Source: Thalia democratica (Eukaryota). From it: a stretch of DNA of 64,000 bases. A program made the position numbers and the translations under genes. Shown here one piece after another: positions 881 to 51,729 of the stretch; the stretch's first letter is position 1, and each line of letters opens with the position of its first letter. The stretch spans positions 36,394,001 to 36,458,000 of the forward strand of contig OZ241828.1 in NCBI GenBank assembly GCA_965202585.1, in the 5' to 3' direction. The notes beneath the pieces were generated by a model, which did not search any database, was not told the origin of the DNA, and saw nothing but the letters and a program-made list of their open reading frames with translations.

Positions 881-1159
881 AGTTTTCTTTTTGTTGTAAA
901 AATAAGTAACTGCTTTATAACAATATTTGTTTTGACTAAAAATTATTTCAAAATTTTCTAAAACAATAAAAAGTCAATATCAAGACTTTATTAGACCTCT
1001 CGTTATTATTGTTTTAAAGAGACTATAAAAGTTATTCTTCTTTGACGACATACTTTAGCTGCCGAACGCCATTTTCTACAACACATATATTGAAAACAAA
1101 CAATGAATATTATAAAAAAAGTCTACCAGTTTTCAAAATCATGTAAATTCAACGAACAG

Positions 1160-1557
1160 ACGCATACACGGGTCAAATAGTTCCAGGACAGAACGTGGAC
1201 CACGGTCGCAGGGGAGGACACAATTCATCGGGGGAGCGCGGCAAGGATCAAGGGGCAAGCAGCAAGAGGAGAGGCAAGACGACGAGACAGAGGACGGTGC
1301 TGAACGAGAAGCAGCTGACGGTGCTGCACACCTTCTACGACAACAACTGCAGGCCCGACGCCATCATGAAGGAGCAGCTGACCGCCATGACCGGCCTCCC
1401 TCAACGAGTCATCAGGGTGTGGTTCCAGAACAAGCGGTGCAAGGACAAGAAGAGATCGATCGCGCTCAAGCAGCAGCAACAGCAGAAGATGGAGCAGCAG
1501 CAGATGAGGAACGGCGAGGGAGGGGAGCAGCAGAATTCCAGGCAGCAAAAGCAGCAG
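1160..1557 (+). CDS. isl: Islet copy A, exon 5: homeodomain (1279-1458) plus Q-rich tail
   Basis: Acceptor AACAG| at 1159 and donor CAG|GTTGGC at 1558. Phases are 1 and 0. Translates (D)AYTGQ...[14 protein letters not shown]...[17 protein letters not shown], the Islet homeodomain signature. The boundaries are the same in copy B. Confidence 0.96.
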
Positions 1558-2517
1558 GTTGGCTGGTTTGATATTAAATAAAAAAAAGTTAAGAACTTGC
1601 TTTTGAAAAAAATAATTTAAGTACTGTAGATTTAGAAGAACTTTTTTTTTTGTTATGCTTTTAGTTTGCTAAAATTAATAAGAATATGCTTTTACTTTTG
1701 CTAAAGTAATTTTATTACGCGTGAATGAAAACGTGTGTCAGAAAAAAAATTATTCATTGCCCTGATTTATTTTTTTGCTTAAAATTCCAAGTTTTTTTTT
1801 GTAGATATTTTAAGACTTTAAAAATGTAGCTAGATACTCAGAAAATTTTTTTAATTCTAAGGTTGTCTTTTATTATACAGTCTTAACATGTTTAACCTTT
1901 ACAAACCATAAAAATCTCTTTAATTTTATTTAGTCTTTCTCTTTAGTCATATAAGTTATTTAATTTGTAGCATTAAACAAGTAATAGCATTTTTTTTTAA
2001 TTTATTTTTTCTACTAGAATTAATAGTTTCAGATATTGTTTTTTACTAGTAAAACAAAAGGTTGATTGATATTGAAAATTTTAAAAAATACACCTGTTAT
2101 AATTAACTAAAAAAGTATTTAAATACCATGCTTTTTTATGAAAAATTAAGAAATTGAATACTTACAATAAGAGCAGACGCAAATTATTTGTTATCGGATT
2201 TATTACTGTTTAGTATCAAATATATTTAAAAAAAAAGTGTACAAATGTTAAAAAATCTTATTTATAAAACAAATAAAACAAGATTAAGTTAAGAAATAAA
2301 TAATTATTGAATTTTTAGTAAATGGCATTTAAAAATAATTAATTAAATACTTGATTTTAAAACATTGTAAAGCATGTTTTGTTACATAATTTTAACAAAA
2401 AACATCGGCGAAAGTCTGCAGAAAAAAAGTCCGGACTTTCGTTTGCCGTGAGACAAGCTCAAATTTAACAAAAGGGTTGATCATGCCAATTCGATCATCA
2501 GACCACAAGTTTCGGTA

Positions 2518-2560
2518 GACTGAGACCGGTTACGTCCTTATTAGGACTCATCAGTCAGTC
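2518..2560 (-). ncRNA. Minimal hammerhead ribozyme, core-mutated copy (GAAA to GTAA)
   Basis: Reverse complement reads GACTGA CTGATGA GTCC TAATAA GGAC GTAAC CG GTC TCAGTC. The single arm mismatch (2532) falls in the conserved GAAA. Confidence 0.8.
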
Positions 2561-2643
2561 ACAACCGAAAAACCTGTAGTCGTCAATCTACAAACGGTTT
2601 ATCATGCTTTCACATGAAGCAACCATTTGCTGGCAATGGTGCT

Positions 2644-2686
2644 GACTGACTGATGAGTCCTAATAAGGACGAAACCGGTCTCAGTC
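2644..2686 (+). ncRNA. Minimal type I hammerhead ribozyme, intact core
   Basis: Stem I GACTGA/TCAGTC; core CTGATGA; stem II GTCC-TAATAA-GGAC; GAAA; palindromic helix III ACCGGT; GTC cleavage triplet ending at 2680. Confidence 0.9.
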
Positions 2687-2984
2687 TACCGAAACTTGTG
2701 GTCTGATGATCGAATTGGCATGATCAACCCTTTTATTACATAATTTTATTTACATATTTTATCTGATACATACACGTTGCACCACTGTTGCTTTTTTAAT
2801 GTAGTATTTGAGACACAGTCAATTAACATTTTAATATTAATGCAGTACATGCTTTCAAAATAGCCTTCAAATATTCATTTCACACACTTATTTCTGTAAT
2901 TAATGTTTATTTAGTTCCCAGTCACTCATAAAACCTTATTTTAAATTTGTCGGTCAATACATTCAATAGCTTATATTGAACTTT

Positions 2985-5423: not shown

Positions 5424-6498
5424 TCGAATTTCAAATCATGTAAGTTTTTTGGTTTTTAATACTTAATATAAAAACTTTGTGTAAGGAGGGGGTTTTAGAA
5501 CAAAAAATTATGTTAAAGAACATTTTTGTATTAAACGTCTATTTTTTCAATCGGGTTTAAAAAGGTAATTAATGCTCTAAAACAGCTCAAGAAATTAAAA
5601 CTAGTCTTATTTTAGGTTTATGTAAACAATTGACAGCTTATAATTTTTTTAATAAATTAACATCATCAGAAATGCATAAAATATTCATTGAAAACTTTCA
5701 TGACTGTAGTCTTAGTAGTACAACATGCATTTAATTATTTTATTATAAAATCCAATTTTGCCAATTGCATTTCGCTATTGCAAGATTATGGCGTAGTTTG
5801 CTTGGTATAAAAATTGAAATTTTTTTAACTTGGTTCGCAATTTGAATTTTTTTGTGGAAATATAAATAAATTTCATGATGATTTAACTGCTTTTTTTTAG
5901 TATACGTTCTTAATTAAATCATAATTCAAAAAAGATTACGACAAATTTGTCTTATTATTATTATTTTATACATTGCTACGATAATATTTCTATTTATAAT
6001 TTTTAGTCGAACTAGCATTCTATTCTAAAATAAGTACTTAAAACAGTCAAACTAATCTGAAGAAAAAAAAGCATTGCAAATAAATGATAGACTAGCTGTG
6101 CATAAGTTAAAAAAACCCTCAAACCAAGCCTGCACGCAAAAAACCCTCAAATCCCCACCAAGCCTGCATTCTACAGCCACAGTGACGTCATAATCACAAG
6201 TAGCGCGCAAGTGTGCTGAGTGTCTCTCATCAGAAAATCAGTAAAACCATCTTTAGAATAAAAGAAGATAGTTTTTCTTGTATTGATTTGAAAAGTCCTT
6301 CATCGATTATTTATTGTGGCAGTGTAATTGTAATAGACAGTTTTAAGCTTGCTTAATTTTTGATTGGGATTGTTGTTAGTTGTTTTAAATATTAAATACT
6401 TTCTTGCTCACCTTTTTCAAAGAACTTTAAGATGTTGTAATTTAAATTAGTTGTAAAAAAGTAGCCTTATTTTTTTTTAAACGCTGTACTTATTTAAG

Positions 6499-6693
6499 AA
6501 CAAAGCATCCAGCTCAAATAATGGACCTAACCAGTCAGACCAGCCGGTCAGCATTCCAGGACAAAATTCAAACCAGTCCATTGACCAGTCGAGGGGTTAC
6601 CACCATCATCAGAAGCAGCAGCAGCCGGCTTGGAAGGCGCTGAGTGATTTTGCACTGCAGAGCGAAATAGAAAAACCCCCGTTTCAGCAGCTG
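6499..6693 (+). CDS. isl: Islet copy A, exon 6 (C-terminal conserved motif)
   Basis: TTTAAG| acceptor, 65 codons NKASSS...QQQPAWKALSDFALQSEIEKPPFQQL, then |GTTTGT donor, phase 0/0. Matches the Islet PWKxLSDFALQSDIDxPxFQQL motif. Confidence 0.93.
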
Positions 6694-7945
6694 GTTTGTT
6701 TGTATTTTGTTTTGTAAAGAGTATAGTATGATTGTTTTTGATAGAAATATTGTCGTTAAAACAACGTTTTTATATTGTCATATAATCAACTGTATTTATA
6801 TGGAAAATAAATTATTCTGCACATTGAAAAAGCATTTTTTTTAAGTTTGATCAATTAGTTTAAAAAAAAAAAAATAAATGGCTGCCTCTCTTTGATAAAA
6901 AACTGATTTTCATTTAGAAACTTTTTCGCATACATGTAAGATAAAAATGAAGATTTTAGTTATCTTTTAATTGTTGTACTTGGCGTTTTATTTCAAAATC
7001 TGAAGAATTAAAGTTACTCTTCAAACTTTTAAGTTTTTTATAACTTTTTTAATTATTATTTTTTTTTTATTACAGCAAGTTTGAATTATCTGATATCAAA
7101 ATTTTACTAAAATCTTTAACTTTTATCTATTTTGTACGCAATAAGTCACACATAACGTTGTGTACTTTTTAATTTTAAAGTTCAAACTAACCTTGCTAAA
7201 TATTTGATAGTTTTTCGTTAGACCTATTTGTTTTGAAAGCTAGGAAAATATCATAAAAATGTTGTGAAATAAACTAAAACGTTTACTGACGGTATTATAT
7301 CGGGCATTATCTACTTATTTAGTTGTTGAAGTGACTTTGTAAAAATACTGGTATGAAATAGTTTTTAAAAACTTTTGTTTCTTAAAAATACTTTTATTTT
7401 AAAGTTTATATTTAACTTTTACAATCGTAGTTTAAAAGCCAAGTTCGAAAAAAGCAATTGAAAGACAAACTTAAGCATACTTGTTAATTTTGTTAAAATT
7501 TTTAATACAAAATCTGATGTTTATTCATTGTAATTTTTATCAAGAAGATCTTAAACTAAATTTTAAAGAAAACAAAAAGTACAAAGTGTGTAAATATTAC
7601 ATTAAATATAACATTGGTACCAGATATGCATAGGTTTAGACTGTTACATAAGTATTTAATAAAAATAACATTTATTAAATTAAACAAACAAATTCAATTC
7701 AAGACATAAGTTAATTATAGAAGTTACTGATTCAGGATTACATCTGAAAAAACTTTTTAAACTAATATTCAACCAATGTTTTTTTTTAATCAGTGTATTT
7801 TCAGTAACCTGGCATTTCATTAGGATAGTAATTTGACTACTTAGTGACTACTAATTACAAGTTAAGTTTGAACGCATAATCATTTAAAGACAAATTTTAA
7901 ATTTATCAAAATATTAAAAGCGAAAAACACTAAATGGTTTTTCAG

Positions 7946-8075
7946 GTGAGCAACTTCTCAGATCAGGCTCCCTCTTCAATGTCTGATTGTTCGGAGGTTT
8001 GCAGCATCCCCTCCGTATCCTCCCAAAGTTACTCAACTAACTCTTGCGCTACTCCACCACATCTTGTCACAGAAA
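7946..8075 (+). CDS. isl: Islet copy A, exon 7
   Basis: TTTTTCAG| acceptor; VSNFSDQAPSSMSDCSEVCSIP... resembles the Islet V-NFS...SEVxS tail. It ends at donor A|GTAAAT (8076), or reads through to TAA at 8081-8083 if the intron is retained. Confidence 0.85.
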
Positions 8076-13693: not shown

Positions 13694-13925
13694 TGTTTTT
13701 AACGTTGCAAGCGAAGCGTTTGATTGATATTTCATTGAAAATGTTCGAAATAATCGCCTTGCTAAAAGCGAGCGTGTTGAAGCAATACAAAAGTAACAAC
13801 AAATCCTGTTGGGCTGAAGTTTACACAGAAGAAGCAGAAGCTGCCAAAAACCTCTTAACATTGACCGCCAGTTTTTACAACAAGTTTGTTTTCAATGAAG
13901 AAAATGTTTAATAGGCGGTCGTTGT
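13694..13925. promoter_or_regulatory. Paralog-conserved downstream block (partner ~56103-56325)
   Basis: TTTTAACGTTGCAAGCGAAGCGTTTGA...ATCGCCTTGCTAAAAGCGAGCGTGTTGAA is shared. Confidence 0.55.
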
Positions 13926-16900
13926 TTGTAATCTGTTAATTTTGTTTTGAACAACAAAGCTAACAACTTATGATTAATATTTGAAGAAGCTTTTTGACAT
14001 GTTGTTAATAATTTAAGACTTTAATAAAAGTCTGCACGCGCTAACTAAGATAAAAAAAAAAGTATTTCTAATATTGTAAACTGTACATTATAATTTAATG
14101 TTTCTAAAAATAGTGTTTATTAATCTAGCGCATAGTGTTACAAACTTTGCGCACAGTTTTTAAAATTACTAAATGCTTTTACCAAACATAATAAAAATAG
14201 CTTTTGTTATTAATAGTATTATAATCTTTTAGATGAAGCAGTTTTGCTTGTACAAAAAAATATTTGTTGTACTATCTATTATCGTTCTCGTGGTGAAATT
14301 TTATATGTTTAAAATAATCAATCAGTTAAATTTATATTTAAAATTTATATCAAAAAAACAAATTCTTATAAGCTTTTACTTAAAAAAAACTTAAACTAGT
14401 TGGGTCACCAGTTTATCAAAAATTATAAATGTTTTTTTTTGTATACAACACATGACTTATAAAATAGCTACGTAACTGTTTACATATATCATTTTACGAT
14501 TTTTAAAAACTTATTTTTGTTAAATTAAGTATTTAAATTGAGATATTATAAATTTTTTAACTTTTACTAAACTAAACCTTTTTTTCTTTGGTTAGTTTTT
14601 AAAAACAGTCAACTAAGAATACTTTAAAAGCTTTTGAAAAAACTTAAACCGAGAGTTAACTTATGTTTAAATATTGTAATAAGCTTTTAAATAAACTTAA
14701 ATCTTACCAGAGACCTAAAAAGTTAGCTTTTAAAAGTTTTAACTGGTAATATTTGCCTAAAGTTGAAAAAATCAGTTGATATTATAACCAAAAAAAAGGT
14801 GAGATAACAATAAATTTTGATGGAAATCGGAAGCAACAGTATCTTGCTGCAAATTATTTTATTTTGCATAATAATGATTTATCATCTTAGCTACTAGTTT
14901 CCTTCAATTTTGCCAGTACTTTTGTGCGCTATTCATTACATGCACTGTGATTATATAATTGGAAAGCAGTTTTGATATCTTAATCAGGAATTTAAAGTCA
15001 TAGAGTTGATTTTTATGTTTTTGGCATGCTGGTTAAAGTAAAATTGTTAAGTCTAAATCTAAGTTAAATATAGGTACGTAAAGTGAAACAATAATTAAAT
15101 TGATGCTAGTTATACCGTTAAAAAAAATAACAAGCTAGTTTTGAAAAAGCATTTAGATTTAACAAAGCTTCTACTTAAATCTTTACAAAAATAAAGATTG
15201 TTCTCATTAATATCTCATAATAGTTTAGCAGTTTCTAAAAAATGCATTTACTGTAAAAATTATTATTGATTAAGCCAAATTTATTTTAAAGATACGTATG
15301 AGTAAACGTTTTAACAGTTTTTCAAACTTAAAATATCTACCTACACTCAGACTTTTGGGAGCCTCTAACACCATCTTTAAGTCTTTCAAACAAAGTTTTT
15401 TTATGAATACATGATAAAGTATACAAAAAGTCATAAACTGATAACATATCTTTTGTTAACCGAAGACTCTTCCCTTTAGTGATTGTCCTTAGTGATGACC
15501 AATGAAACTAGGTTTGTTCTTTTTAAAATTAATATTTGTAGAAGGATGTTAGTGTTCATAAGATTTGATCGTTTTAGGGTTTGCGATAAATAACACATCA
15601 ATCAAATTGGGTTTTGTTTTAGTTTTCTTGTAGTCCGAAAACAAAGAATAAGACTACTTAATTTTTCAGTGATTTTAGTGGCCTATAACATTTTAGTTTT
15701 ATAAGTACTTTATCATAAAATATTTTAAAGTGTTATTTATTTCTTAAATAATTTTTTTTCAATATTTTTAAAGCATTTCTGACAAAAATGCATTGTTTTC
15801 TTGCTTAGACAATTTTAACGTTGAAAATAAGTATTAGTTATGTAAAGCATTTTAAATCATGTAGCATTTAATTGTATTTATAAATATGCTCTACATTTCC
15901 GCATTAAATTTGCTTATTTTATCAAACGGTACTTAAATTTTATTATAAACTTAAGGATATAGACAGTTTTATTTAAATATAAACTCTACATTATCATTTG
16001 TACTTTTAACACAGCTAATATTTGATTAGAGATATTGATGTAAAACAATTCTTATTAGATTTAATACTTTAGCTCTTAGAAAAATATATGAATTTAAAAT
16101 GTAAAATATACTTTTAACTTAAATCCTTTAGAAAATAAAATCATACTTTAAGTTTAAATACTCTAAAGTAAGACTAACACTTTCGATTTTAATTTGCTTT
16201 TTTGTTGGATAGTTTTACTTTATTATAACCAATTACACAAATAAACTTAAAATATTGCATAACTTTTATCTATAAAAAAGTTTATGCATCCATAAAATGT
16301 TAAGGTACAACTTAATAGAGCGTTTGCAAAGTAACAAAATACTTTACTTGTCTTTTAAAGTTAGTAAAACAAATGTTTGAAGCAGACTGATCGTGAGTAA
16401 TGCAAGTTTTGGTGAAAACAAAAAAATACTCTCAAGTACATTTACATTTAAAGTTTAATTGAAAAACTTTGAAAAAAGGTACATCGAATTGAAATAACTT
16501 TCGAACCGTTGTGCTAAACAAGAAATCTAGCAAGTTAAGCAATTATAGCAAAACTCAAAAAAAAACAAAGCAAATAGCTAGAAATTTATTCAGCAAAAAT
16601 GCGTAAAATTACTTCCACTTAATGTTGTTTAACATTGTAATTATCCACCAAATACCGACATAAATTTTATTTTAGCATAATTCGATGTTGTCCTGCTACT
16701 CAAGATGCTCATTTAGATGCTCAATTACTTTTTAGTGTCGCTTTTTACGCCAATAACTTCACATTTTGATACATATGAGTGGAAGCGATTTGGTAAATTT
16801 TAAATTTGGCCGCATTTACTGCTTGGCCAGTAAGTTTTTGTTTCCATAGTAACGACCTTGTAATCAACTGCCAAACATACTCGCATACAGTGGCACATTA

Positions 16901-21125: not shown

Positions 21126-21964
21126 TAAAAATTTTGTAAGATAGTTTTTATATAACAGTAGAACGTTTTTTGGTTTAAAAATAACCTTAAACTCAATGGA
21201 CTACAAACGTTTACGAATCCAAAAGGTTTTAGTTAATGGAGCAAAACTGTTATAGTTATTTTACTAAGAAATTAAATATCTACTGTAATTTTTATAGATT
21301 TAAAGTAAGTTCAAATAGAAATGACCTTAAATTTTTTAAATTTAAACTCAAAGTTTTTAAATGTTGTAGCTGTTATACTAGCTAAATAATAACAAGACTG
21401 AAGCTAGCAACTAAGCATAAATTGAAGTTTTAGAAGTGTTCGATTTAATAAAAAATTTTAACAATGGAGTATTTTATTATGTTAAAAATATTTATTATAT
21501 TTAAAATTTTACACATGTGTTACAATAAACGCACACTCTTTTTAAGTTATGTTAACTTAAACAAAGTGACAAACTCTTTTTTTATGAAACTCAAGTAAAC
21601 AAATGTATAACTATTAAGATTGAAACTTCGATAATGTTTGTAAAACTAAGTTTAAATTAAATTGTTTATTAAATGTTGGTCTATTAAATGTAAAGCCTTT
21701 TCTATGAAATTAAAATTTTCTTTTGCTATACTTTTATTAAAAATAAAAGTTATTTAAACCGCCATTAGAAAAAAATTACTAAAACAGTGTACAAAAGGTT
21801 TTTCAAAGATTATGCTTGACAAAATACTTTTTTTTTGTCTAGCAAACAAAGCATATTTATTTAAACTAAAACTAAGCATTAGTAAAACAAACTTTTAAAT
21901 TCTAAATAAAAACAAAATAATTCATCTTTTTTTAGTTGTTTAAAATGCTGGTATATTTTCAACT

Positions 21965-22165
21965 GAAAAGTGAGGCAGCCAGCAAGACTCTTTTGTACAA
22001 ACACGAACCAACATTTCTATTGATGGTATCTCACGTGGAATGTACCATCTTTATAGCGCGGCTACTGATACAACCACACTGCTTATCTTTTGTTTGATTG
22101 AAATAATTCCTTTTGTAAAACTTATGTGTTCTATTATTTGTTTTGCAGATTTAGAAGAAGTGTTT
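21965..22165. promoter_or_regulatory. Paralog-conserved downstream block (partner ~59153-59348)
   Basis: TGGAATGTACCATCTTTATAGCGCGGCTACTGATACAACCACACTGCTTATCTTTTGTTTGATTGAAA is identical in both copies. Confidence 0.62.
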
Positions 22166-23789
22166 AGTTTAAAAAGGTGTTTTATTTTTGTTTACTTTAA
22201 AACTGCAGAGTGTATCAGAAATTTTCGATTTTTTTATATTATTCATTAATCTTTAACGTAAGCTCATTTTTTAAAACAAAACATTACTTCAAGTATATTC
22301 AATTCAATTCAATTTATATTAAGCATAATTTGTTAGACAAACACGTTTAAACGTAAATCAGGTTCATACAAATATTATTTAAATATTTAATTTCTTTTAA
22401 AAAAGTAGTGTTTAACGAAACAAGGTTGAATTAAAAATTAATGCTTTTAGGGGCACTTATTTAGCCATTTAGTAAATCCAAGCAAACCAAGCATAATGTT
22501 TTAAAAAAAGTGAGTTTTTGAAATGAAAAGTTTTAAAATCAGCATATTTTTAAGCTATGTGATTTGTTAAAACCATAAAGTTGTACATTTTGCACTTGTT
22601 AAGCAAAAGCTAGTTAATTTATTTTGCTCATGGACTATTTAGTATTATAGTTAATCTTAAAGTAAATTTTTTCAGCAGATTAGATTATATAAAACGTTTT
22701 CAGCATTGTATATTAAAAAGATGAAAAGCCAAATATATATTATTTAGTATTAAGAAAGAACTACTTAAATTTAGCTCTTTTTAAATGACTATTATTGTTT
22801 AACATATTCGTACAAAAATTAATATTCCATTATATACTAACAACTTTAAGTTTATAAAATCTCAAAGATATATTCTTTTTAACTTAATAATTTATAGTTT
22901 TCTATTACAAAATGTATTTTGAGCTAATCTAACTCAAATACTATTTCCAAGTAAATATAAGTGTAAATAAAAACATAAGTTATCCATGCTACTATAAAGT
23001 ATTCTTTATACCTAAATATAGTGACTTTTGCTACTTTAATTTATTAACAACTATTACAAGTGTGTTATTTTTGCTAAACGTAAAAAAGTTTAACTAAAGC
23101 AAATAAGTAGAAGTAAAGCTTTTAAAAACATGAAGTTGTGTTCTACGACAAATTTTGATATATAATATATCCGTAAACATAACTATATGTTTTTTTTTAA
23201 TCAATTACGACAGTATAAAAATAATTTACTCTAAAATAAGCGAGAAAAAAACATCAATAAAATATTTAAATTAATAAAAGTTTATTTTGAAAACAATAGA
23301 GCGTAACACAGCATTGATTAAAACTGTGTTAGAGTATCTAGCCATCATATTTAGTATACTGAAAAGTTACTACAATAAAAAAAAAAGTACCAACAATATG
23401 AAAACATTTTTGACAAACTTTTGCCAAATTCAATACAAGTTTTCCTAGTTTAAATCAACTTTGACAACTTTTGTCAAAAATTTAAAATTAATGATTTTTA
23501 ATTAGTAGTATTTTATCTTTTTGTCGAGTTTAATGTACAAAAGCAAAATATTTTAATTTATTGGTAGAATATGTTAAATCTTGTTTTTTTACTGATTTGA
23601 ATTTATAAATTTGTAAATCATTTTAATATAAAATATTTCTGTTTAAAAAATATGTTTTAGAAATTAATATTTTATAATATAAACTTATTTTAGATATCAA
23701 AAGGAAAATTGAAAATACGTAAAAGTATATTTTAAAAAGTTGACTTAAATATTTAAAAAAAAACGTTATGAAATCAATAAAAATAAGTT

Positions 23790-27739: not shown

Positions 27740-28215
27740 ATTTAAGTTACAAAAGTTCGCTTCAAATTTTCCTTGACTCGAGACTGTCCTGTAGTGTTCG
27801 ATTCAGAAATCATCGACAAGAATTACAATGATGTTGTTGTGAAACAGTCGCAACTAACAGTTTGACAAGTTCTTGAAGTTTGCTGTAGTTCTTATTAAGC
27901 ATACAACTCTTACAGCTTACACGATTCATTACAAATGATACCTGATGTTCTATACGAAAAAACACATACTGCATGTTTTTATGCAACCCGGTAGCTACAA
28001 TTTTACACTTTCCACAATACCTGTGTGAGGTTCATTCCTCATTGTGATATCCTGCGGGAATTTCAACTTTGCGCGCGATCGTAATATTCTGCTCGGTAGC
28101 GAGATTTTATCACCACTAAGCAGACGGCTGCATTGTGAGCGCGTGCGTATGCGGCTGATAAGAGATAAGAAAATTATTTTTGAATCCAAGCCAACAACAT
28201 TTGTGTGTTTGAAGT
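27740..28215. promoter_or_regulatory. Paralog-conserved downstream block (partner ~62305-62680) with tandem GATA sites
   Basis: AGCGCGTGCGTATGCGGCTGATAAGAGATAAGAAA.TATTTTTGAATCCAAGCCAACAAC is shared. Copy B lacks about 55 bp from the middle. Confidence 0.62.
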
Positions 28216-31200
28216 AGTTTGAGCTGGTTGAACTGTTTTAATGCATCTTGAAATTAAAATCATTAGAATACTTTATAAATATATTATTATTATTTTTTTA
28301 AATATTGTTTTGTGACAATTTAATTTTGTAAAAATTATTTAAAATCACCCTAGAGGCTTAAAATTTGAAAAGGGATTCTTTTTTATGTAATAATAACTTT
28401 AACCTTAGTGTAGTTTAAATTATTTTAGTTAAAATAAAAATGTTTAAGCAACTTTTAAAACTTTATTACGGTGTAATTAATCTGTTTTTAAAGCTATAAA
28501 CTTAGAACTTTATATTGTTACATTGGTGCAATGTTAGTTTATATAATTAAACTGCCTTTATTTATTTTAAAATAGATTGAAGCTCTTGCTTTATTAAAAA
28601 ACATAAACGCATTTTTGATAATTAGGTTGTGTACAAAAGCTTACTCGCATTGTCTTTTAATTTGACCAATTCAAATTTAATTGAATCAATCATGTTTACA
28701 CTCTAACTTTAAAGCTTATAGTAAACATAAAAACTGTTTTTATACAACATTAATTAAGAGCAAAAAAAAAAAACTTTAGTTTGTTTAAGTACTGTTATAG
28801 GAAGGTTTTTGAACGTATTTATATACCATTTGCAACTTAATATCAATAGATTATTCATTTTGTTTTATATTTTGTTACACAAAGCTTTTCAAAACTATAC
28901 GAGCTTAACTAAACTTTTAACCTCTAAATCTCTAAATTTTGTATTTATTTAATTTATTCATACGTCATAATTTAAAGTTATTTTTAAGCTGTTCACTTAC
29001 CAAAAAAAAAATTTCAAATTTTATTTCTAATTCATCAATTAACAATTAAACTTGTATTATTTTGAAAAGCTTTGTGCAATAAATTATAAATCAAAATGAA
29101 TAATCTATTGATATTAAATTGCAAATGGTATTAAATTTAGTTTGTTTATTATGTAGTGTTTGTATGATAAAGTCATTAAATATATTGTTTTTTGTACTGT
29201 ATTAAAAGTATATATGTTTAGAGCAGAAAACTTTTTTTTCAAATTACTAATTGTGCGACTTTGTTATTATTTCAATCACGATAGCTTTATAAATAAGCAT
29301 AAAACAGCATTAAAGGAGAAAATATTAGTAAAAAGTACATTAAAAGAATGAGTTTAAAACTGTTTTTATTACAGTCTGAAAACAAAAACAGGGCTACAGA
29401 ATTTTTTGAGATGAAACAAAAGTTCGCTTTGATGATGAGTTGGCAAGTTTACATGCAAATCGGACATTTTAGTCACTTTTTACACGTGTTTTCACCTGAA
29501 TTTCACTCAACATTCGAAAATGACCAGCAACTATCAATCAATATGTTACCTCTTAATAACCAAAAATATAACGCGACTTTGTTACGTCATATAGAGCTTG
29601 GCACATCCGTTGTGGAACTTGCATGCGCTGCATTTTATTTCAGCCTGAATACTTAAGCCACATTTTTCTATTGATTGTATTTATTTTGTCGTGTCGTGAT
29701 TTCATAGACATTATGGAAGCAAAGTTAGCCAGCATTCGTGTCTAGAAACAAGCCACCTGTCTCGATTTAAATTGTATTATTTTTACGCTGCTTCTATTAA
29801 GTAGATTGATGTATTAAGTTTTAAAGGTATTAGAGTAGAAAAAAAAATGTTTTCATACAATCAACTTTTAAAACACTATACAATACATTGATTAATTTTA
29901 TTCTACGAATTTAAGCTTTTGAATAATAAAATTAAGCAAAAACAGTTTTGTAACACTTTAACTTGAATGTAAGTTTTATTAACTTTTTTTTTTATACAAT
30001 CAAAATCATAGCAATAAGCCTTATTGCAAATATAAGCTTCCAACTGCATTTAAAAGTAACAGTTTTAGAATTTTTTTTCATAAAATTATACGGAAGCTAG
30101 TTAAATGACATTTACGATAGTAAAAAGATGATTGTCAGAAGGAAACTTTTATACCGGATATTTGCACACAATAAAATTTAGTTTTTATTTGAAACCCTTT
30201 TTGATGAGTTACTGCTACAACGAAATCACATATTAAAAAGATATAAAAGAAGACTAGATAAATAGACTTTTATTATTTTTTTACAGTTATTCACAATCGT
30301 AATTATTAATTTGATTAGAATTTTAGTATAATCGACAAAATTAAATTAAAACATGTTAAACGAGCAGTTATGAATCATGAAAAAATATAATTTATAATTT
30401 AAGTATGTTTGCTAATGATTGGTACCGTCTAGAACATTTTATAAAAAAAGAACTATTTATTTTGTAAACCTCTAATTAAGCTATAATTCTATACCATATA
30501 TAACCATATAATCCTTTAACAACTTCACAAGAAACTATTTTTTATTCAAATAAGAAAATTACACAACAATGCACTTGCAAAACAAAACTATATAAAACTA
30601 CAACACGATTCAAAAAAATCCAGAGATAATAAATAATATTTGTTTAGTAAACTTATATTATTTGCATTGCTGTCGATCAGTATACAAACACGATCGGTTG
30701 CTAACAGTAACGCGTTTCTATGCAACATTCACGCGTGAGCGATCACAAAACTGGCGCTACTGTTAAGCTCGAATCAAACTTCGAAATTATTTTATTTTAC
30801 CGTGTGACTTTCCACAGCAATTACTACCTTCGCATCATCTGGTCGGGATTTAAAATAAATCCTCTGTCTTGTTGCGACCTGATGAAAGCAAAATAACTTA
30901 AACGGCGATGTTTTCTTATTCTCACACTGTAAATGCAACCGGAATACTTGAAATGAAAACACATGCATAAAAATCAAACAAAGCCTTTGAGCAAATTACG
31001 CTTGTATTTTATCAACCAAATATATTCTTATCTAAGTCTTCAAAAATTCAAAAAGATTTCTACTTCTAGCTGCTAATTCCATTGGCGCGACGGGAAAAGG
31101 GGAATTATTTGCAACTGTGAAATTTAATTAAGGATTAGCAGAGTTGTTGGAACTCTCGTTATCTACAAAGTCTTCACATACGAGAGAGTTGTAGCAACCA

Positions 31201-36339: not shown

Positions 36340-36539
36340 NNNNNNNNNNNNNNNNNNNNNNNNNNNNNNNNNNNNNNNNNNNNNNNNNNNNNNNNNNNNN
36401 NNNNNNNNNNNNNNNNNNNNNNNNNNNNNNNNNNNNNNNNNNNNNNNNNNNNNNNNNNNNNNNNNNNNNNNNNNNNNNNNNNNNNNNNNNNNNNNNNNNN
36501 NNNNNNNNNNNNNNNNNNNNNNNNNNNNNNNNNNNNNNN
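36340..36539. other. Assembly gap (200 N)
   Basis: Run of N. The flanks carry diverged copies of the same ~180-bp sequence (36160-36333 and 36745-36936). Confidence 1.
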
Positions 36540-37323
36540 TTTTTATTAAATAATATTTAAAAACTCAGTTGCAGTTGATAAATCACTAAAGTTCTTATAA
36601 AATAGTAAAAATTACAAAAATCAGCTTTTTAAACTCTGAGATAAAACACTTTTTAGATGATAGAAATGCTACAATTATTGATCACTTAAAACTTAAGAGT
36701 TTCAGATGGTACTTATTTAGCTATTTAAAAAAAAGAAAGCAACCGATTAGCAGTAAAATTTTTGGACCAAATATTGGTATCATTCGGTGAGAAAAGGAAA
36801 ATATTTTTAGGTGTTTGATTAATAAATTACAAGTTTTATAGACGCCGGTACAAGCTCGTTGTAAAAATTTACGCAAATTTGCAGCGAATTAAGCGGCCAT
36901 TATCCCGGTGAACCAATGTAGCTACCGGACTATAAACGGCTAAAATGTAGTTATATTTTTGATAAAAAACGTTTTATTTAACTCACCTTGTCTTCCTTTT
37001 AAGCCGCAATGAGGTGAATTTATGATTCTTTTTCCGGTGGTCGCTTTTACTTAATTGAAATTACGCGAAATGCGAAGTAAAATTTTAATTTTACTTAAAA
37101 CTTCTTGTCGATTTACATAAAATATATTTTTTTAGTATTAATGCGAGATTAATTTTAGCAATTAGTAACAAAGATTTATGTATAGAAGACACAATTAAAT
37201 TACAAAAACGTATATACATTTTTAATTTTTTTTACAACACTTGCTCAGATACAAACAGGAATACTTCAAAGTTCATGACTCAACTTAATTTTATCAAAAG
37301 TTATTCAATTAATATTTTTTCAG

Positions 37324-37504
37324 GTTTTACAAGGAACTGCATGGGGTGCGGGCACCTAATTCACGGCCCCTACATCAGCACGTCACAAGGGGTCGACTGG
37401 CACTCACAGTGTCTCAAGTGCGCCGCATGCGGATGTAACCTGGGAGATATGAGAACCTGTTATATCAGGGACGACAAACCTTACTGCAAAAACGACTACT
37501 TCAA
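37324..37504 (+). CDS. isl: Islet copy B, exon 2: LIM1 domain
   Basis: TTTTTCAG| acceptor; C-x2-C-x17-H-x2-C-x2-C-x2-C-x18-C-x2-D (CMGC...HSQCLKCAAC...CKND); AA|GTTTGT donor, phase 2. Confidence 0.95.
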
Positions 37505-38117
37505 GTTTGTATAAGATTATATATGATACTTTTGTAATACGCTTGATTTTGTTTTAGTGCTCGAAGAATGTATTTAACATGTAATATATCAGAAACTTTA
37601 AAATTAAATAATTACTTGGTAATATGTTAAGTCTATTTTAGATCACTATGAAAGCTATTTTAATATTCATCTATGTAGAAGAGGTTTAAATGAAAATTTA
37701 ATTTTAGAAAACATAACTTTAGAAACATTTGTTTTTCTTAAAACAACTAGTAAGTATACAAACAAGTGGTTACAAAACAATTCAAGTTCAGACAACTAAA
37801 ACTCTTGGAAAAAAATAAAAGGGCCACATCTCAAAATCTAGTAAACATTTTATTTAAATAATAAAAGCGGTCATAGGTCTATATAATACCTAGAAACAGA
37901 TTTTTTGACTTTGCAAAATTTTAAATATTTTTCGAGATATGTCAAATATAAGTTTTAAAGCTTAGAATTTTTAAGAAACTGTTTAACTTCTCTGTAAATA
38001 AATATTTTTTTTGCAAAATAATAGTAGTGTTTTTGGATATTAATTAAACCTACAACTAATTTCTTTTTTTTTAATTTATTACTTTTAGAGTTGTATTGTT
38101 TTAAACCCTTTTTTAAG

Positions 38118-43500: not shown

Positions 43501-44095
43501 TATTGTTTGTGCAACCGGTAGTCATTTTATCAGTATTATTTTACAAATAATATTTGAATAGTTTGAGCTTAACAGTTAAATTATTGTAAATGATAAAAAG
43601 TTCATAAACAACAAACATTTGATAATATGCGTGAAGATTTAACTTTTGAGTTTATATATAACAAAAAAAAAAATCAAATTAAAACGTTTGTTACTTAAAG
43701 CTTCTATAACAAGATTTTTGATTATCAAAGGTAAACATTTTCCGAAAAACTACTAAAAAGGTAATAAAAAACCTATTAAACTGTTAAAAAACGACTTTAT
43801 CTTTAGAGAATTGATAATTAAATTATTTTTTCAAAATTACATTAAGTTGCTGCCTTTAGAAAACCAATTAGTTTAGTGGTTTAATTTTACTAAGAATAAA
43901 TGTTCTTGAAGATATCAAGTTGTAAATAATCTTTTAAACTTAGTCCCTTTGAAAGAGTTAGAAAAAAAGCTACTTAGAAACTTGTACAACATTTGAAAGC
44001 TTAAGTAAGTTGTTCCTAAAACATTTATTTAAAACACCTCCAACTAAAACAAGTGAACCAATAAGAAACGTAACTAAACTTTGCTTTATTTTCAG

Positions 44096-44194
44096 ATTGT
44101 TTGCGCCAAAATGTGCAAAGTGCACACTTGGACTGGTCAAAGGGGAGTTGATGATGTCTAGCAGAGATAAAAAGTATCATGTTCAGTGTTTTAG
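44096..44194 (+). CDS. isl: Islet copy B, exon 3: first half of LIM2
   Basis: TTTTCAG| acceptor; LFAPKCAKCTLGLVKGELMMSSRDKKYHVQCF(R); AG|GTTAGT donor; phase 2/2. Confidence 0.95.
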
Positions 44195-44521
44195 GTTAGT
44201 ACGTAACATTACAAAAGTTTGTTTGACCCATCTGTTTAGCTTTAAAAATTCTAAACAGCTTCTGGTGCATGAACACTGTAACAATAAATTTGAAAATTTT
44301 CAAAAGCAGTTTACCTAAAACTATTGAGAGTAGTTTGTTTTAATATTAAGCACGTTTTAATAATTACATGTTAATTATGAATTACTTCAATTGATTTGTA
44401 TTACAGATGTTTAAAAGGTCTAATGCATGCATTTTATATAGAGAAAAGTAACAGAATGTTTCTTTATAATTATATGTTTGTTTAATTATGAATATTTGCT
44501 CTAAGTTGATTTGTATTACAG

Positions 44522-44649: not shown

Positions 44650-46939
44650 GTGAGTCATTTGACTTTTAAAATGCTGTGGTAAAATTTTGTAATGCTTGAA
44701 GAAGTATCGTCTTATACGAAAAGGTATTTATAAAATTTAAAGCTTAACTTCTAAACAAAGTTTTATGTTCTACTTACATACTGATATTTCAAAAAAAACA
44801 TGTTACTTTTTAAACGTTTACCTTAACTTAAAACTTGATAGGACTTATTCATTGAGCAATCAAGTTTAAAAATGTTTTTGTTAACCGTTTATTATTTTAA
44901 GGTAAACCAAAGTATTTTAAACATGTTAAAAACAGTTTGTTTGAGCTTTTAAGTTTATTAATCATTTTATTTTTTCAATATTCAGTTTTTACTTGTCTTT
45001 TGTTGTTAGTAAATGTTAATACTTATAAAGTGCCCTAATAAAATTTAAAATATTTATAATTTTTATTTACTTTTTAAACTAAAACTTGTTTAAGATTATT
45101 TGAATTGAGAACTGTATTTATATTATAGTAGCATGATAGTTGTCTAATATAAATATTTATTTTCGTTTTCATTTACAATATCAAAAATAAACTGGTTGTG
45201 CAAATCTACCTATAATACCATTGGAAGTACACTTACTAAACAGAGACTTAAAGTTACTACATACAAAATGTAACTTAAACACCCTAAATTAAAGTTTTAA
45301 TCACTTATTAACCTCTAACTTGCTCGAGGTGTCAGAAGCTCAAACAGAAGTCAGTCAACCGTGAATAAAACGTGCTCCCTTGCCAGCGGCTACTATTTAA
45401 TCAGGTAATCCGTGCAAGTTAACCTCGCATAACTTGACCTTCGCACTTTGTAATCTGATCAGATTTGCCGCGGCGAAAGTTTCTACACAATGAAGCTCGT
45501 TGTAGAGTGAAGAGGGAATTACTACTAATCAAAACTTCTTTTGATTGTTGAGACTGAAAAATTTTTGAACTTCTGGCTTTTCCGTTTGTTTTTTTATCAA
45601 TTATCGCCTTAATTTGGCACTAAAGTGTTATTGATCTTACTGGTTTTGGTTTTGCCTTTCTTGCTGCGTAGAGAAACTCTCGCAAGATAAAAACGTCAAA
45701 GCTAATTATTAGTGTGTGATAAAGTTGAAGAAAGCTTAGCAGAAAAAATTATTCGTCCATATTATTATTCTTTTGTGCATTCTTGATACTTTTTTTAACA
45801 AATTAAACATTAAGGATGTTTACAAAGCCATAAGTAATGGTTAAAAATACAAAAATGTACTTTTTCCTTCCATACTTTAAAAAATTATTGTTTTTCTCCA
45901 TTATCTTTACATACATAGTTTCTTAAATTCTCGACTAAAAAAGTAGTTTTTACTTTTGATGCATGATGTACTTGATAAAGTTTAGAAAAAATGTATATTT
46001 CTAGTAATTGTATTCGAGCAAGTTTGTTTAATTGTTTTATCCAATAAACTGAAACCTTAAGCAAAAGAATTTTAATAACTAGTAAAAAGCGAGCTTATGC
46101 ATTAATCAGTAAACTTTGATAAAACAGTGCTGTCTAAAAACAACTTAATATCTATATAAACATTGTAATGTTTAATCAACGTTAAATGACAATTTCAAGA
46201 ACGTTTTTTATGTTTTAAATTAAAATATTTTTCAAAAATTCAATGCTACAAAATCTAAAAAATAATTCAAAAAAAAAGTTTAAACCAAATCAATCAAAAG
46301 CAAACTTATTATGCGGAAACAATGACGTCGACGCAGCAATGTTTATGACCAAACAAAAACTGTTCCCAGCTGACATTCACTTCTTCAAATATTAATAAGT
46401 AGACAAGTGTCCTTCGAAGTTACAGTCACTTTGAAGCTGTCACTCGAAAGCAAATTGCCACAATTAAGGTATTAATACAACGATAACGACAAGTTGCCTC
46501 AAGCTTTAAACAAAGTCACCTGCAAAATAGTTGAAGCTGACTTTCAAATAATAATCTGTTACAGTTGAAATAATTGGCTTTATTGGAATTTTCTATCAGC
46601 TTCGACTTATGTGAACGTTCGAAGTTTTCTTTTTGTTGCTAAAAATGTGCCACTGATTTTTCACACTTTTTGTAAATATGCTTTTTAAACTAATGTAGTT
46701 TTTTGTAACGATGACCAGCCTTTAAATTATTTCATGTTAGTATTGTTAAAAAGACGTTGTCAAAGTACAAAGTTATTAAATGACACGCTTTAAACGCCAG
46801 ACGCCATTTTCTACACATACTTCAAAGATTAACTAAATTAGTTGTTTTTGTTAAATTACTTTGAAAGTAAAAATATTTATAAAAGTTCAAAACAAAAACT
46901 GTAAAAATTACTACAAAATTTTTAAATTTAAACTTGCAG

Positions 46940-47337
46940 ACGCATACACGGGACAAATAGTCCCAAGACAAAACATGAACCACGGTCCCAGGGGAGGACA
47001 CATTTCATCGGGAGAGCGCGGCAGGGATCAAGGGGCAAGCAGCAAGAGGAGAGGCAAGACGACGAGACAGAGGACGGTGCTGAACGAGAAGCAGCTGACG
47101 GTGTTGCACACCTTCTACGACAACAACTGCAGGCCCGACGCCATCATGAAGGAGCAGCTGACCGCCATGACCGGCCTCCCTCAACGAGTCATCAGGGTGT
47201 GGTTCCAGAATAAGCGGTGCAAGGACAAGAAGAGGTCGATCGCGCTCAAGCAGCAGCAACAGCAGAAGATGGAGCAGCAGCAGATGAGGAACGGCGAGGG
47301 AGGGAAGCAGCAGAATTCCGGGCAGCAAAAACAGCAG
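46940..47337 (+). CDS. isl: Islet copy B, exon 5: homeodomain
   Basis: TTGCAG| acceptor and CAG|GTTCGC donor. The homeodomain protein sequence is identical to copy A; 16 nucleotide differences in 398. Confidence 0.96.
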
Positions 47338-50300
47338 GTTCGCTGGTTTGATGTTAAATTTTAAAAAAGTATTAAACTTCTTATCTAAGACTAATCTAAT
47401 GGCTATAGATTTATCATGAAATAATAAATTATTTTTAATTATATTGCTTTTAGTTAGTTCGTAAATTTTTTATTATCTTAAAGTGATTTTTATTAACTTA
47501 CAATAAAAATAAATAACTTTAAAATATTTGAACAATGCCCTGACCTGTATTTTTTAGTTTTAAATTCTAAGTTAATCTATGTGAAATACTTAGAAAAACT
47601 TTTTTTTAGATAGATAAACAAAAATTAGACAGTTTTAAAAGTTCATTTTTGCTACTAGAATAAATAATCTAAAAAACAGTCTAATACTAGCTTATTACAT
47701 GTAAAAAACAAATAGTTACCTAATATTAAAAGTTTTTTAAATGCAGCTATCTTCACAAAGATTAAATAAATAAAAAATTCTTACGACGCTTATTTATGTA
47801 AAATAAAAAATCAAATACTTATGATTGGAGCTGCTAATCGAGCAGATATACATATTTTAAGTGAGATTAGTTTTTTTTTGTGTCAAATAAATTTAAAACA
47901 CATAAATTATGAACATTTAAAACTCTTGATAAAATAGAATGAAATAAGAGTGTTAGTTAAGAAATAAGTGACTTACTAAATTTTTATTTTTTGACAACTT
48001 AACATTGTTTAAAGACTGATTGCTTAAAAGCAACGTAAAGATTTTTTTTTACATTAAATTAGGTATATTCTTATCATATACATGTGCAGGATGCATAGAA
48101 GCACTGTTGCTTATTTTACATAATACTTGACAAAAATTTACTTTTTAAATGAAAAAATAACAATACAAGTTTTGAAAATTGCCTTCAAAGATTTCGTTTA
48201 TACCATTTCGTTCGTAACATTCTACTTAGTTCCCATAAACTAATTAAACTTCATTGAATATCGTCAGTTAATATATTCACTACTTTCTATTGCACTTCCA
48301 CACCGATTAATGCTGACCCCTGACCCTTGACAACTTTAAACTTCTCGGTTGTAGTTGAGGCAGCAGCAGATTACTTTCGAAAGTTCTTGCCAAATTTCAC
48401 GCCTATCGTGCCACCCATTAAGCCTCAACAACAAAGTCTTATGACGTCATAATCCAATGCATTTCGCACAGCTGCAGTTTGTAAGAGCTTGCCTTGTAAT
48501 GCTTCTATCTTGAATTTGCTGACCATCTACGCTTACTTGGCTAACAAAAGTTTTGATCAGTATTAAACTGTTTCTTAAAAGTCTTTTTATTTCAAAATTT
48601 TTGGCAAGACAAATGAAAAACTTTGATACAAAGTCTAAAAATATCAAAATGCTTTAAACTTAAACTTGTTTAAGTTTTTTTTTCAATGTCTAAACATTGT
48701 TACTGTGACCAAATGAAATTTATTTTATATAAAGTGTCTTCTTTTTAAGTTAAAACTTAAAATTATCACATTATAGTACCTTTTATTAATAACTTTTCAT
48801 ATGGTTTTAAGTTACTTATGTTTTTTTGCAGCAACAATTATTTTCATTAATATTATTTACTAGTTAAAAAAACTTCAGCTTTATATTTATAAGTACGATG
48901 CAATTTATCAATTTAAACGTTGTTTTGTTAGTCGTTTTTTTTTTAGAATTTAGACTTATAAAGATAAAGCATATACTTTATAAACATCATAAAGACTTTA
49001 AACCTTATAAAGTTTTCATACATCAAAAAATTATGAGCTTAAAACTTATAAACGACTGTTTTGGTGGTCCATTAGTCAAATTTTACCTTTATAAAGTTTA
49101 CGAGGTAAACAAGCCATAAAAAAAAAATCACCAACATTTTATTTGGCAAGTTCGACAATTTTGCACTTTTACATCTCGAGACCATCTCGGTTAATGACGT
49201 GATTATGATAAACGACATCCATTTGCGTTGCCCTGACGATGGTTGCCATATGTTCAAGATGCTCCTTTGGGAAGTTGTTACCATGGAAGCGTTGTGCCAC
49301 CAATTTAATTACTCGCCCATCATGTTGGTTTTTATATTGGTAAAAAAAAACACAACCGATTTTATTTTCGTTTCTTGACTGTAATAAATTCAACTAACAT
49401 TTTAATAGTGAATAAACAGTTGAAAATTTGAATATAAGACAAAAGGAAAAAGTGTGCAATTAAAGGAATTTTAAGTTGAGTTAAGGCTGTATTTTAAGTA
49501 GAATTTCTACCTATCCGACTTTGAATCATTTTTTTCTTTACACCTGCTTGAAAATAAGCTACTAATCAAAAATAAAATAGAAGAAAACAGAAATACGGAA
49601 ACAACTCATTTATTTTTAATTAACTTGGGTCAGAAGCGCGTGGAAAATTTTAAAAATACAAGTTGTTACGTCATAAAGGTCAGAGAAAAGCCAGAGAGAC
49701 CAAACCGTTCTTTTTTGTTGTTGGCGCCGCGATGCAGGGACGAGTTTTCTGCATATTCATGAGCTCATCGATCAGTGTGATCTAAGATAAGGAATTTTTC
49801 CTTCTTCTTACTTTTCATGGGTTTAAGTTGTGAATGACACTACTTGATACTTTTTCCTTTAACAAGATACAAGCTAATTTGTACGGTGAATATTAAAACA
49901 ACGAGGTTTTAGATTTAAATAACAAAAAATGCAAACAATTGAGCAGGTGATCAATAGTTAATTTAATTTGATGACACGCGTTCTGCTTATCTGCTTGTGC
50001 TTCCGACATTTTATTAAAATAAAGTATAGTGACACATAAATAAAAAAACAAAGAAAATAAGTATCAACATAAGTGAAATATTTTAAAATTCATATGTAAA
50101 ACAAGAATAAGTTTCAGTAGTTTTCTGTAAATTTATTCATAAGTATCAGTAAGATCACTAAAGTGTGTAATTTGTACCTATATTTTGAGTGACCGATCAG
50201 CTACAAATTTCTATCTCTTAAGTTTTTACAGAAATCACTTTTACAAGTTTAATTTAAATTTTGATTAATCTACTAAAGCAGTTTTCGACGTTTTTAAGTT

Positions 50301-51490
50301 AATTTGCGTGCTAAATAAGTAGAATTATTTTATGTCTTTAATGAAAAATTTTAATAATTACGTTTGTAACAGGTAAAAATGTAAAAGTAAACTATAAAAT
50401 ATTTATACTTTTCAAAGTATACGTTTATAAAACTTCCATAAACATGCAAAATATTTCAATCAAAGTTGAATTAAAACACGTTCAAGTTATTTTTCGGCAA
50501 AAACTTAAATAAAACTCTGTGTGAGTAAGAAACTATCAAATTAAAAATATTTTTAAATAATGTTTTTGTAAAAAACTTTTCCTTTTTAATTCGGATGTCC
50601 AAAAAAACAGCTCAAGAATTTTTGCTCATACTATTTTTATTTTTATTTTACCAAGTGCTAGCTTGTAATTTGTTTATTTAATTAACATCATCAGAAACGC
50701 ATAAAATATTCAGCAAACTACTTCAATAAGCTTTCACGATGGTAGTCACAGAAGTAAAACAAATATTTTATTAAACAAATTAAATTGTTTAATTTCCTTG
50801 TTGCATTAAATATGGTGGCGTAGTTTGCTAGTAGAATTTTTTAATAGGATTTGAAATTTACTTTCATCAGTAAGAAATATAAACGAATTGCTACCACAAT
50901 TTAGTTCAATTTATTTTATTTATTTTTTTTAAGATGAAACAAAGTTTGTAAAAAACTAGTTAACATAAGTTTACACATTTCTATGATTATTTTTGTTTAT
51001 AACTTTTATAAAGTTACAAAATTATATTAAAAAAAATCAAAATAGCCAAACTAATCCTTAGAAAAAACCGTATTCTAAATAAATAAAATGCTAGCAGTGT
51101 ATAATTTATTCAAATTAGCTTCAAATTCACATCAAGCCCGCATTGTACAGCTATATAGTGACGTCATAATCACAAGTGGTGCTCAAGTGTGCTGCGTGTC
51201 CCTAATCAGCAAATCAACGAAATCAACTTTCTATAAGGAGAAGATAAATTTTCTGATCGATTTAAATATTTGTTCATTGTTTTTTATTTGTGGCAGCTTA
51301 ATGGGATAAACAGTTTCAAACTTGAATAAGTTTTGATTGGGATCTTTTTATAGAAGGTTTAACAATCAAGATTTTCCTTCTCACTACTTGCAAAAAATTT
51401 TTAAAACGTGTTACATTAGTTTAATATAGAAAAGTATTAGACTTTAATAAAATACTGTTTTTTTCTTTAAAACGCTGAAAATAATTTTAG

Positions 51491-51682
51491 AACGAAGCAC
51501 CCATCTCGAACAAAGGACCTAAACAGTCAGACCAGCCGGTCAGCGTTCCAGGACGAAATTCAAACCAGTCCATTGACCAGTCGATGGGTTACCATCATCA
51601 GAAGCAGCAGCAGCCGGCTTGGAAGGCGCTGAGTGATTTTGCACTGCAGAGCGAGATAGAAAAACCACCGTTTCAGCAGCTG
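51491..51682 (+). CDS. isl: Islet copy B, exon 6
   Basis: TTTTAG| acceptor; NEAPIS...QQQPAWKALSDFALQSEIEKPPFQQL (64 codons, one His fewer than A); |GTTTGT donor. Confidence 0.93.
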
Positions 51683-51729
51683 GTTTGTTTGTAAACTGCT
51701 TTATATTAAATGATGAACTTCACCACAAG

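Follow-up and report, generated by a model that had tools for sequence, protein, structure and literature searches.

Does a hammerhead ribozyme that faces its own antisense copy inside an intron of an Islet gene serve that gene, as a lock or a switch, or is it a passenger of the element that carried it there? The question is raised by positions 2395-2735 of the DNA analysed here, a stretch of 64,000 nucleotides from Thalia democratica (the window), which a sequence-only reading had described as a tolerated insertion or, alternatively, a structural switch.

The host gene and its empty counterpart

The window contains two tandem Islet copies on the plus strand, copy A at ~600-28200 and copy B at ~46380-62690, with 75-94% identity. 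The exons that define the host intron and its surroundings are as follows.

~1147-1557, plus strand: homeodomain exon of Islet copy A (Pfam Homeodomain, 58 bits), the upstream exon of the host intron
~6498-6694, plus strand: next exon of copy A, with the Islet-specific motif WKALSDFALQSEIEKPPFQQLV, which closes the host intron
~7940-8074, plus strand: further C-terminal exon of copy A, with a counterpart in copy B
37089-37511 and 43962-44315: LIM exons of Islet copy B

A CAG/GTTGG donor lies at ~1557, at the end of the copy A homeodomain exon, and the exon at ~6498-6694 encodes ...PAWKALSDFALQSEIEKPPFQQLV; this exon and the one at ~7940-8074 are both conserved in copy B. With the homeodomain exon on one side and C-terminal exons on the other, all on the same strand, 2395-2735 is placed by its context inside a real Islet intron and the ribozyme of its right arm in sense with Islet, in agreement with the sequence-only reading (flanking exons ~1147-1557 and ~6498-6694, both plus). 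Copy B retains a single target site and no element, that is, an empty site. Since one target site without an element is what copy B holds, the insertion and its target duplication are real, and comparison of copy A with copy B bore out the earlier statement that the insertion is missing from the latter.

Anatomy of the inserted element

The element was resolved into two unequal, inverted copies of a 328-nt unit, for which position 1 was set at the first base 3' of the ribozyme cleavage site.

2382-2394: left target-site duplication TTACATAATTTTA, a direct repeat (2377-2394 with one mismatch)
2395-2638, minus strand: primary copy of the 328-nt unit, unit 214-328 then 1-125, antisense to Islet
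2395-2469, minus strand: one-sided tail of 75 nt, unit ~55-125, only on the primary arm and outside the inverted repeat
2470-2561: left arm of the 92-nt inverted repeat (1 mismatch in 92)
2502-2572, minus strand: hammerhead with core CGUAAC, dead through a T-to-A change at 2532 on the plus strand
2562-2642: spacer of 81 nt, in which unit ~214-290 from the primary copy is joined by the inner junction (~2639-2642)
2643-2734, plus strand: secondary, inverted, 5'-truncated copy, unit 291-328 then 1-54/58, in Islet sense and without the tail
2644-2686, plus strand: intact minimal type I hammerhead of 43 nt, predicted cut after C2680
2736-2748: right target-site duplication TTACATAATTTTA, a direct repeat (extends to 2731-2748)

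The 13-bp target duplication reported to bound the insertion was recovered, and it reaches 18 bp if one mismatch is allowed. The inverted repeat as a whole pairs 2463-2566 with 2638-2741 (104 nt, 95% identity). Within it the reverse complement of 2643-2734 is 2470-2561, with a sole mismatch at 2532 and a spacer of 81 nt, so that the near-perfect 92-nt reverse complement noted 81 nt upstream of the ribozyme arm was reproduced to the nucleotide. The primary copy (2395-2638) stops at the canonical 3' end of the repeat family, and the secondary arm (2643-2734) is 100% identical to array units at other genomic sites. As the minus arm is the primary copy with the tail and the plus arm the secondary one, the element integrated antisense to Islet, the sense ribozyme being part of the short secondary arm. 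The predicted folding energy of the whole hairpin is -213.5 kcal/mol (z = -23.9).

Two hammerheads, one with an intact core

The plus-strand hammerhead has helix I GACUGA/UCAGUC (6 bp), helix II GUCC/GGAC (4 bp) with loop UAAUAA, and an intact core at 2650-2680 (CUGAUGAG...CGAAAC...GUC) that contains both CUGANGA...GAAA and an NUH triplet. Alignment to the HH9 structure places the open end at helix I, hence type I topology, and helix III consists of ACCGGU without any loop, the short palindromic helix III of the minimal class. The intact minimal type I hammerhead read at 2644-2686 in the sense direction is thus upheld in its core, in helices I and II and in ACCGGU, and its assignment to the kind found in Penelope-like elements (PLEs) and animal retrozymes matches published descriptions (PMC4209133; PMC7229834). 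The single arm mismatch indeed kills the minus-strand core, as had been seen, with 2532 turning GAAA into GUAA.

An Infernal search with Rfam models, which had been suggested as a check, matched both arms to Hammerhead_HH9 (plus, 2634-2700, 31.8 bits; minus, 2502-2572, 35.6 bits), both under the RF02275 gathering score of 52; the best copies in the repeat family reach 38.9-41.2 bits. These low scores are explained by helix III lacking a loop (the ACCGGU palindrome). At E<=0.001 Rfam gave no match in the 64-kb window apart from the two HH9 arms, and the top genome-wide HH9 match is another copy of the 328-nt family.

A repeat family with a standard insertion architecture

With the 341-nt query, at least 217 scored matches were obtained among 2,395 candidates in the genome. 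The unit has a period of 328 bp, forms arrays in which units are up to 100% identical, and carries one HH9 match each. The exact 31-nt ribozyme core occurs 1,516 times (755+761) in the 802-Mb genome, with no occurrence of the reversed control. In two DNA-like runs, word depth was ~5e5-1.3e6 over the element versus ~100-300 in its flanks, and contigs from the same runs span both element/flank junctions. The unit has a GC content of 43% amid a 24% GC neighbourhood and is non-coding (no ORF; longest stop-free stretch 68 aa); as a circle it is predicted to fold at -102.8 kcal/mol with 69% of its bases paired (z = -5.0). Loose contig ends pointed to a second hammerhead family, which has the same core and a different helix I; only 8 matches to it occur in the genome, and no ORF was found near them.

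Twenty distinct insertions were mapped for architecture. Head-to-head arrangement was observed in 18 of them: a minus-strand array or fragment abuts a plus-strand one, with the ribozymes diverging, and in all 18 one outer end falls at unit 51-71 and the opposite one at 121-139. Inner breakpoints are variable across the mapped insertions, from about unit 160 to 305. Two simple direct copies (L024, L025) end at unit 129-130, which puts the canonical 3' end at ~125-135 and means that the inverted arm is without the last ~70 nt. Flanking duplications of 12-18 bp bound 19/20 insertions (<=9 bp in a mismatched-flank control), and many of these share a few bases of microhomology with the element ends. 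The first 100 exact cores in the genomic listing agree with this: they include 15 close pairs on opposite strands, every one of them in -/+ order. The window copy fits this architecture exactly. By this survey the head-to-head ribozyme pair is the standard architecture of the family, not an Islet-specific device; because 18/20 insertions and 15/15 core pairs share the geometry, no selection at Islet is needed to explain it. More generally, hairpins in which a ribozyme faces its antisense are common in such genomes and are not to be read as gene-specific devices.

We conclude, with a probability of about 0.88, that 2395-2735 is the product of a single retrotransposition of a non-autonomous, hammerhead-bearing 328-nt repeat (a non-LTR retrozyme or Penelope-type short element) and a tolerated passenger of the intron. 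Of the two readings offered earlier, the tolerated insertion is the one supported by the family-wide architecture; the structural switch is disfavoured by the recurrence of the same geometry in 18/20 insertions elsewhere.

A long inverted repeat between direct duplications is also what would be expected of a MITE or foldback DNA transposon, a cut-and-paste element with a merely ribozyme-like motif. The family is built differently: the inverted repeat stops short of the left end, where the 75-nt tail stays unpaired; the arms are unequal, with lengths and inner breakpoints that vary from locus to locus, and consist of 328-bp tandem units; the target duplications are not fixed in size (12-18 bp) and overlap the element ends by microhomology; and the simple, non-inverted copies L024 and L025 exist. 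We rejected this origin on the anatomy of the family and consider it very unlikely.

A second Islet locus carries the same insertion

The insertion had been taken to affect only one paralog, which is contradicted by a locus 213 kb upstream (L002, G000:C4:36183361-36183701) with the same element at the same Islet site. L002 aligns to the window at 94% across all 3.3 kb compared and includes an intact homeodomain exon of its own (98% nucleotide identity). It reads CGAAAC in both arms, that is, both of its ribozyme cores are intact. Since the minus core of L002 is intact, the 2532 mismatch is a point mutation acquired late by the window copy, after the duplication (or haplotype split) yielding L002, and the proposal that this core-killing mismatch is part of a lock fails on the same observation. 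The insertion is shown to postdate the A/B Islet duplication and to predate the duplication (or haplotype split) that gave L002.

Between the window and L002 the arms differ at 3/184 positions (1.6%), the flanking intron at 144/2549 (5.65%), and tail and loop together at 8/156 (Fisher p = 0.016 for arms versus flanking intron, a post hoc value that rests on 3 substitutions). Arms that change less than the flanking intron between two Islet loci are not what passive decay predicts. In a control pair of duplicated insertions (L004/L006), the whole element is 4.8-6% diverged versus 9.35% in its AT-rich flanks. As the L004/L006 control behaves in the same way, the reduced divergence of the arms is not peculiar to Islet; base composition, the alignment or conversion by other copies may account for it.

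These divergences bear on the proposal that the hairpin has been selected as a self-lock or switch, kept as a shield against self-cleavage of the Islet pre-mRNA or as a regulated double-stranded RNA (a Dicer/ADAR substrate). Such a function would be compatible with the intact sense core in an arm 100% identical to active units, with predicted minimum-free-energy (MFE) structures of partial and full transcripts that sequester the ribozyme, and with the 1.6% versus 5.65% divergence between the two Islet loci (p = 0.016). Against it, the p-value is post hoc and depends on 3 substitutions, an element less diverged than its AT-rich flanks is likewise seen in the unrelated duplicated insertion L004/L006, the 2532 mismatch is copy-specific and absent from L002, the same geometry recurs in 18/20 insertions and in 15/15 close core pairs (first 100 listed), and there is little to lock, given that minimal hammerheads on their own have next to no activity (PMC4209133). 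We regard a selected lock or switch as very improbable. Equally little weight is given to the broader view that the 92-bp hairpin is constrained in the Islet loci, where it would act as an endo-siRNA/ADAR substrate or as a ribozyme-silencing, splicing-modulating structure at the homeodomain-to-C-terminal junction; if true, a constrained hairpin would set the insertion-bearing Islet paralogs apart from copy B.

Expected behaviour of the sense ribozyme

Minimal PLE hammerheads have a helix III that is short or absent and palindromic, and they should act as dimers (Cervera & de la Pena 2014, PMC4209133); in the same work a single minimal hammerhead gave no detectable self-cleavage, and dimers and trimers were weakly active. 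The single sense ribozyme of the Islet pre-mRNA would accordingly form helix III only in a dimer, and it would pair with the upstream arm once it is made. In the predicted MFE structure of a partial transcript ending at 2690, the entire ribozyme is paired with the upstream arm; the MFE and cofold runs fail to reproduce the catalytic fold and were used only for sequestration by the upstream arm, not for activity. Pairing of the ribozyme with the arm upstream of it, as expected earlier, is supported by this structure and by the -213.5 kcal/mol hairpin. With no helix III in cis and with pairing to an already transcribed arm, cleavage of the Islet pre-mRNA is not expected: in this model the sense ribozyme would be inactive in the pre-mRNA and the intron would be spliced out with the long hairpin inside. 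That the lock shields the pre-mRNA from self-cleavage, as had been suggested, is not supported, as a lone minimal hammerhead shows no detectable cleavage (PMC4209133) and no lock is needed. The hairpin could feed double-stranded RNA pathways, like any inverted repeat.

Could the sense hammerhead nevertheless lower expression of this paralog by cutting its pre-mRNA after 2680, perhaps through a dimer formed in trans with family RNA? The catalytic core is intact, as are the 6 bp of helix I and the 4 bp of helix II, and family RNA may be abundant: two marine metatranscriptome runs contained contigs over the element only, which carry neither strand nor end information and which DNA carry-over from thousands of copies would equally produce. 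However, helix III is impossible in cis, each transcript has one sense copy only, the 92-bp intramolecular duplex competes, and published minimal hammerheads are poor cleavers even as dimers (PMC4209133). Moreover, one duplication has passed without loss of the insertion or damage to the exon. An active intronic ribozyme is, by these observations, very improbable.

Relation to Penelope-like elements

According to Craig et al. 2021 (PMC8557442), PLEs insert as partial tandems truncated at the 5' end; in many cases they carry, at that end, a 5'-truncated copy in inverted orientation and, at one end only, a tail of 30-40 bp. The 328-bp family shows this signature in its partial tandems, in the inverted truncated copy and in the one-sided extension, which measures ~70 nt versus 30-40 bp in PLEs (PMC8557442). 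With the minimal hammerheads of PLEs it shares the short palindromic helix III that needs dimerisation (PMC4209133). An autonomous PLE has an RT/GIY-YIG ORF, whereas the 328-bp unit has none.

A GIY-YIG search showed that the genome contains an abundant canonical PLE family (RT + GIY-YIG) plus two minor ones, and the genome's own RT+GIY-YIG copies are also head-to-head and 5'-truncated. A Pfam search with the entire 918-aa PLE frame gave no match; searched by sub-region, the frame gave RVT_1 under the cut-off in the RT part and GIY-YIG above the cut-off in the EN part. It had been suggested that copies of the arm be sought beside GIY-YIG/RT ORFs, and here no physical or sequence link to a PLE ORF was found: no hammerhead was detected at ~31 PLE loci (±1.5 kb; 2.8 kb downstream in L073), no PLE ORF in 30 family loci (tblastn with the genome's PLE protein), and no shared sequence between the unit and the one abundant and two minor PLE families compared. 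We infer the PLE attribution of the 328-bp family from architecture only.

On this attribution, a PLE reverse transcriptase/GIY-YIG endonuclease supplied in trans, acting on a multimeric or circular RNA template, probably made the element. The primary copy ends at the canonical 3' end, and an inverted, 5'-truncated second copy without the last ~70 nt abuts it head-to-head. The 92-bp hairpin and the pairing of the ribozyme with its antisense would be by-products of this insertion architecture.

Comparison with other hammerhead-bearing repeats and with L1

Animal non-LTR retrozymes, as defined by Cervera & de la Pena 2020 (PMC7229834), are tandem repeats of ~170-400 nt that are low in GC, carry type I hammerheads, have target-site duplications >4 bp and occur as circular RNAs. 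The sequence-level features of a retrozyme were all found in the 328-bp family (a non-coding tandem repeat of ~150-450 bp, GC <50%, dispersed with target-site duplications >4 bp). The likeness extends to the 43% GC of the non-coding 328-bp unit with one type I hammerhead each, to tandem arrays together with dispersed monomers in thousands of copies with target-site duplications >4 bp, and to a compact unit fold. Intronic copies are likewise frequent among retrozymes, which have been proposed as PLE derivatives, with 42-44% of Xenopus copies overlapping introns (Li, Clavereau & Pollet 2026 preprint, 10.64898/2026.07.22.740005). Circular RNAs are part of the animal retrozyme description (PMC7229834), whereas the 328-bp family is known here by DNA sequence criteria. 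The systematic head-to-head arrangement and the ~70-nt one-sided tail of the 328-bp family do not appear in either retrozyme account (PMC7229834; 10.64898/2026.07.22.740005).

Newt satellite 2 and Schistosoma SM-alpha resemble the family in their repeat length of ~330 bp and in a type I hammerhead whose helix III is weak, and there too activity is expected only on pairing of two ribozymes. In contrast to both, helix III of the 328-bp family has no loop at all (ACCGGU), and, unlike a classical satellite, its copies are dispersed insertions with target-site duplications. Twin priming of L1 offers a parallel for the geometry, with two cDNAs from both target strands lying head-to-head, their 5' ends meeting mid-element and target-site duplications outside. 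However, twin priming is an occasional variant in L1 whereas head-to-head is the rule here, the two priming points of the 328-bp family are fixed at two unit positions, and in place of L1 ORF2p the enzyme is presumably a PLE RT/GIY-YIG.

Implications for the Islet gene and for the repeat family

For the Islet gene itself the insertion is of little consequence, as a passenger that outlived one duplication with the exon undamaged. The family is of more use than the locus: it offers very young arrays (100% identical units) and many independent, clean-edged insertions. The retrozyme literature (PMC7229834; 10.64898/2026.07.22.740005) infers mobilisation by PLEs from co-occurrence and pLTR similarity, without the architecture described here. 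Because this architecture is absent from those accounts, the 328-bp family gives direct structural evidence on, and a tractable model for, the integration of animal retrozymes.

A third Islet-like locus carries the same insertion

A third Islet-like locus (L002, G000:C4:36181861-36185201) lies 213 kb upstream of the window. Its homeodomain exon is intact, with 98% nucleotide identity to that of copy A, the introns of the two loci are 94% identical, and the same retrozyme insertion is present in both. L002 could be either a genuine paralog or a haplotype that was not collapsed. Divergence between the window and L002 was 1.6% in the hairpin arms (2470-2561 and 2643-2734) and 5.65% in the flanking intron (p = 0.016). 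Because a control duplicated insertion showed a similar element-versus-flank difference, the lower arm divergence at Islet is probably generic.

The two Islet copies within the window share three block pairs downstream of the coding exons, 87–90% conserved and without open reading frames; they are candidates for conserved non-coding elements or UTR elements. Repeats within the internally repeated stretch are ~75–87% identical.

13697-13948 and 56103-56354, first conserved block pair
21950-22166 and 59136-59352, second conserved block pair
28117-28223 and 62590-62691, third conserved block pair
53378-55048, internally repeated stretch, direct and inverted orientation, copy B side only
36340-36539, assembly gap (200 N) just upstream of copy B's first LIM exon

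Penelope-like elements and a second hammerhead family

L073:2873-5626, minus strand, canonical Penelope-like element
L061:1470-1530, minus strand, copy of a second hammerhead family (G000:C4:26979804 region)

The Penelope-like element is abundant in this genome (L073 and loci L032-L060), with a 918-aa frame comprising a YIDD RT motif, a CxxC linker and, at the C terminus, a GIY-YIG domain. Many of these copies are 97–99% identical, and copies are 5'-truncated and arranged head-to-head; no hammerhead was detectable within 1.5–2.8 kb of their ORF. The second hammerhead family (…GACUAUGC|CUGAUGAG…GGUC|GUAGGUUG) has the core and helix II region in common with the 328-nt retrozyme family but differs in helix I. 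It was often seen as loose ends in read contigs, yet gave only 8 matches in the assembly; the core of the L061 copy is AGAAAC.

Insertions of the 328-nt family

Among insertions of the 328-nt family (L003-L030; for example L014, G000:C6:41748327-41751680), every head-to-head one had its outer ends at unit positions 51–71 on one side and 121–139 on the other, the gap between these two end points being the one-sided tail of ~70 nt. Target site duplications were 12–18 bp, with microhomology to the element ends.

Diverging core pairs, contig 1:
G000:C1:7203438/7203567
G000:C1:7212582/7212711
G000:C1:8506129/8506258
G000:C1:8849624/8849753

All four pairs have the same 129-nt spacing, suggesting either that composite copies were re-mobilised or duplicated or that one inner breakpoint is preferred. 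Identity among array units reaches 100%, which suggests that the family has been active very recently.
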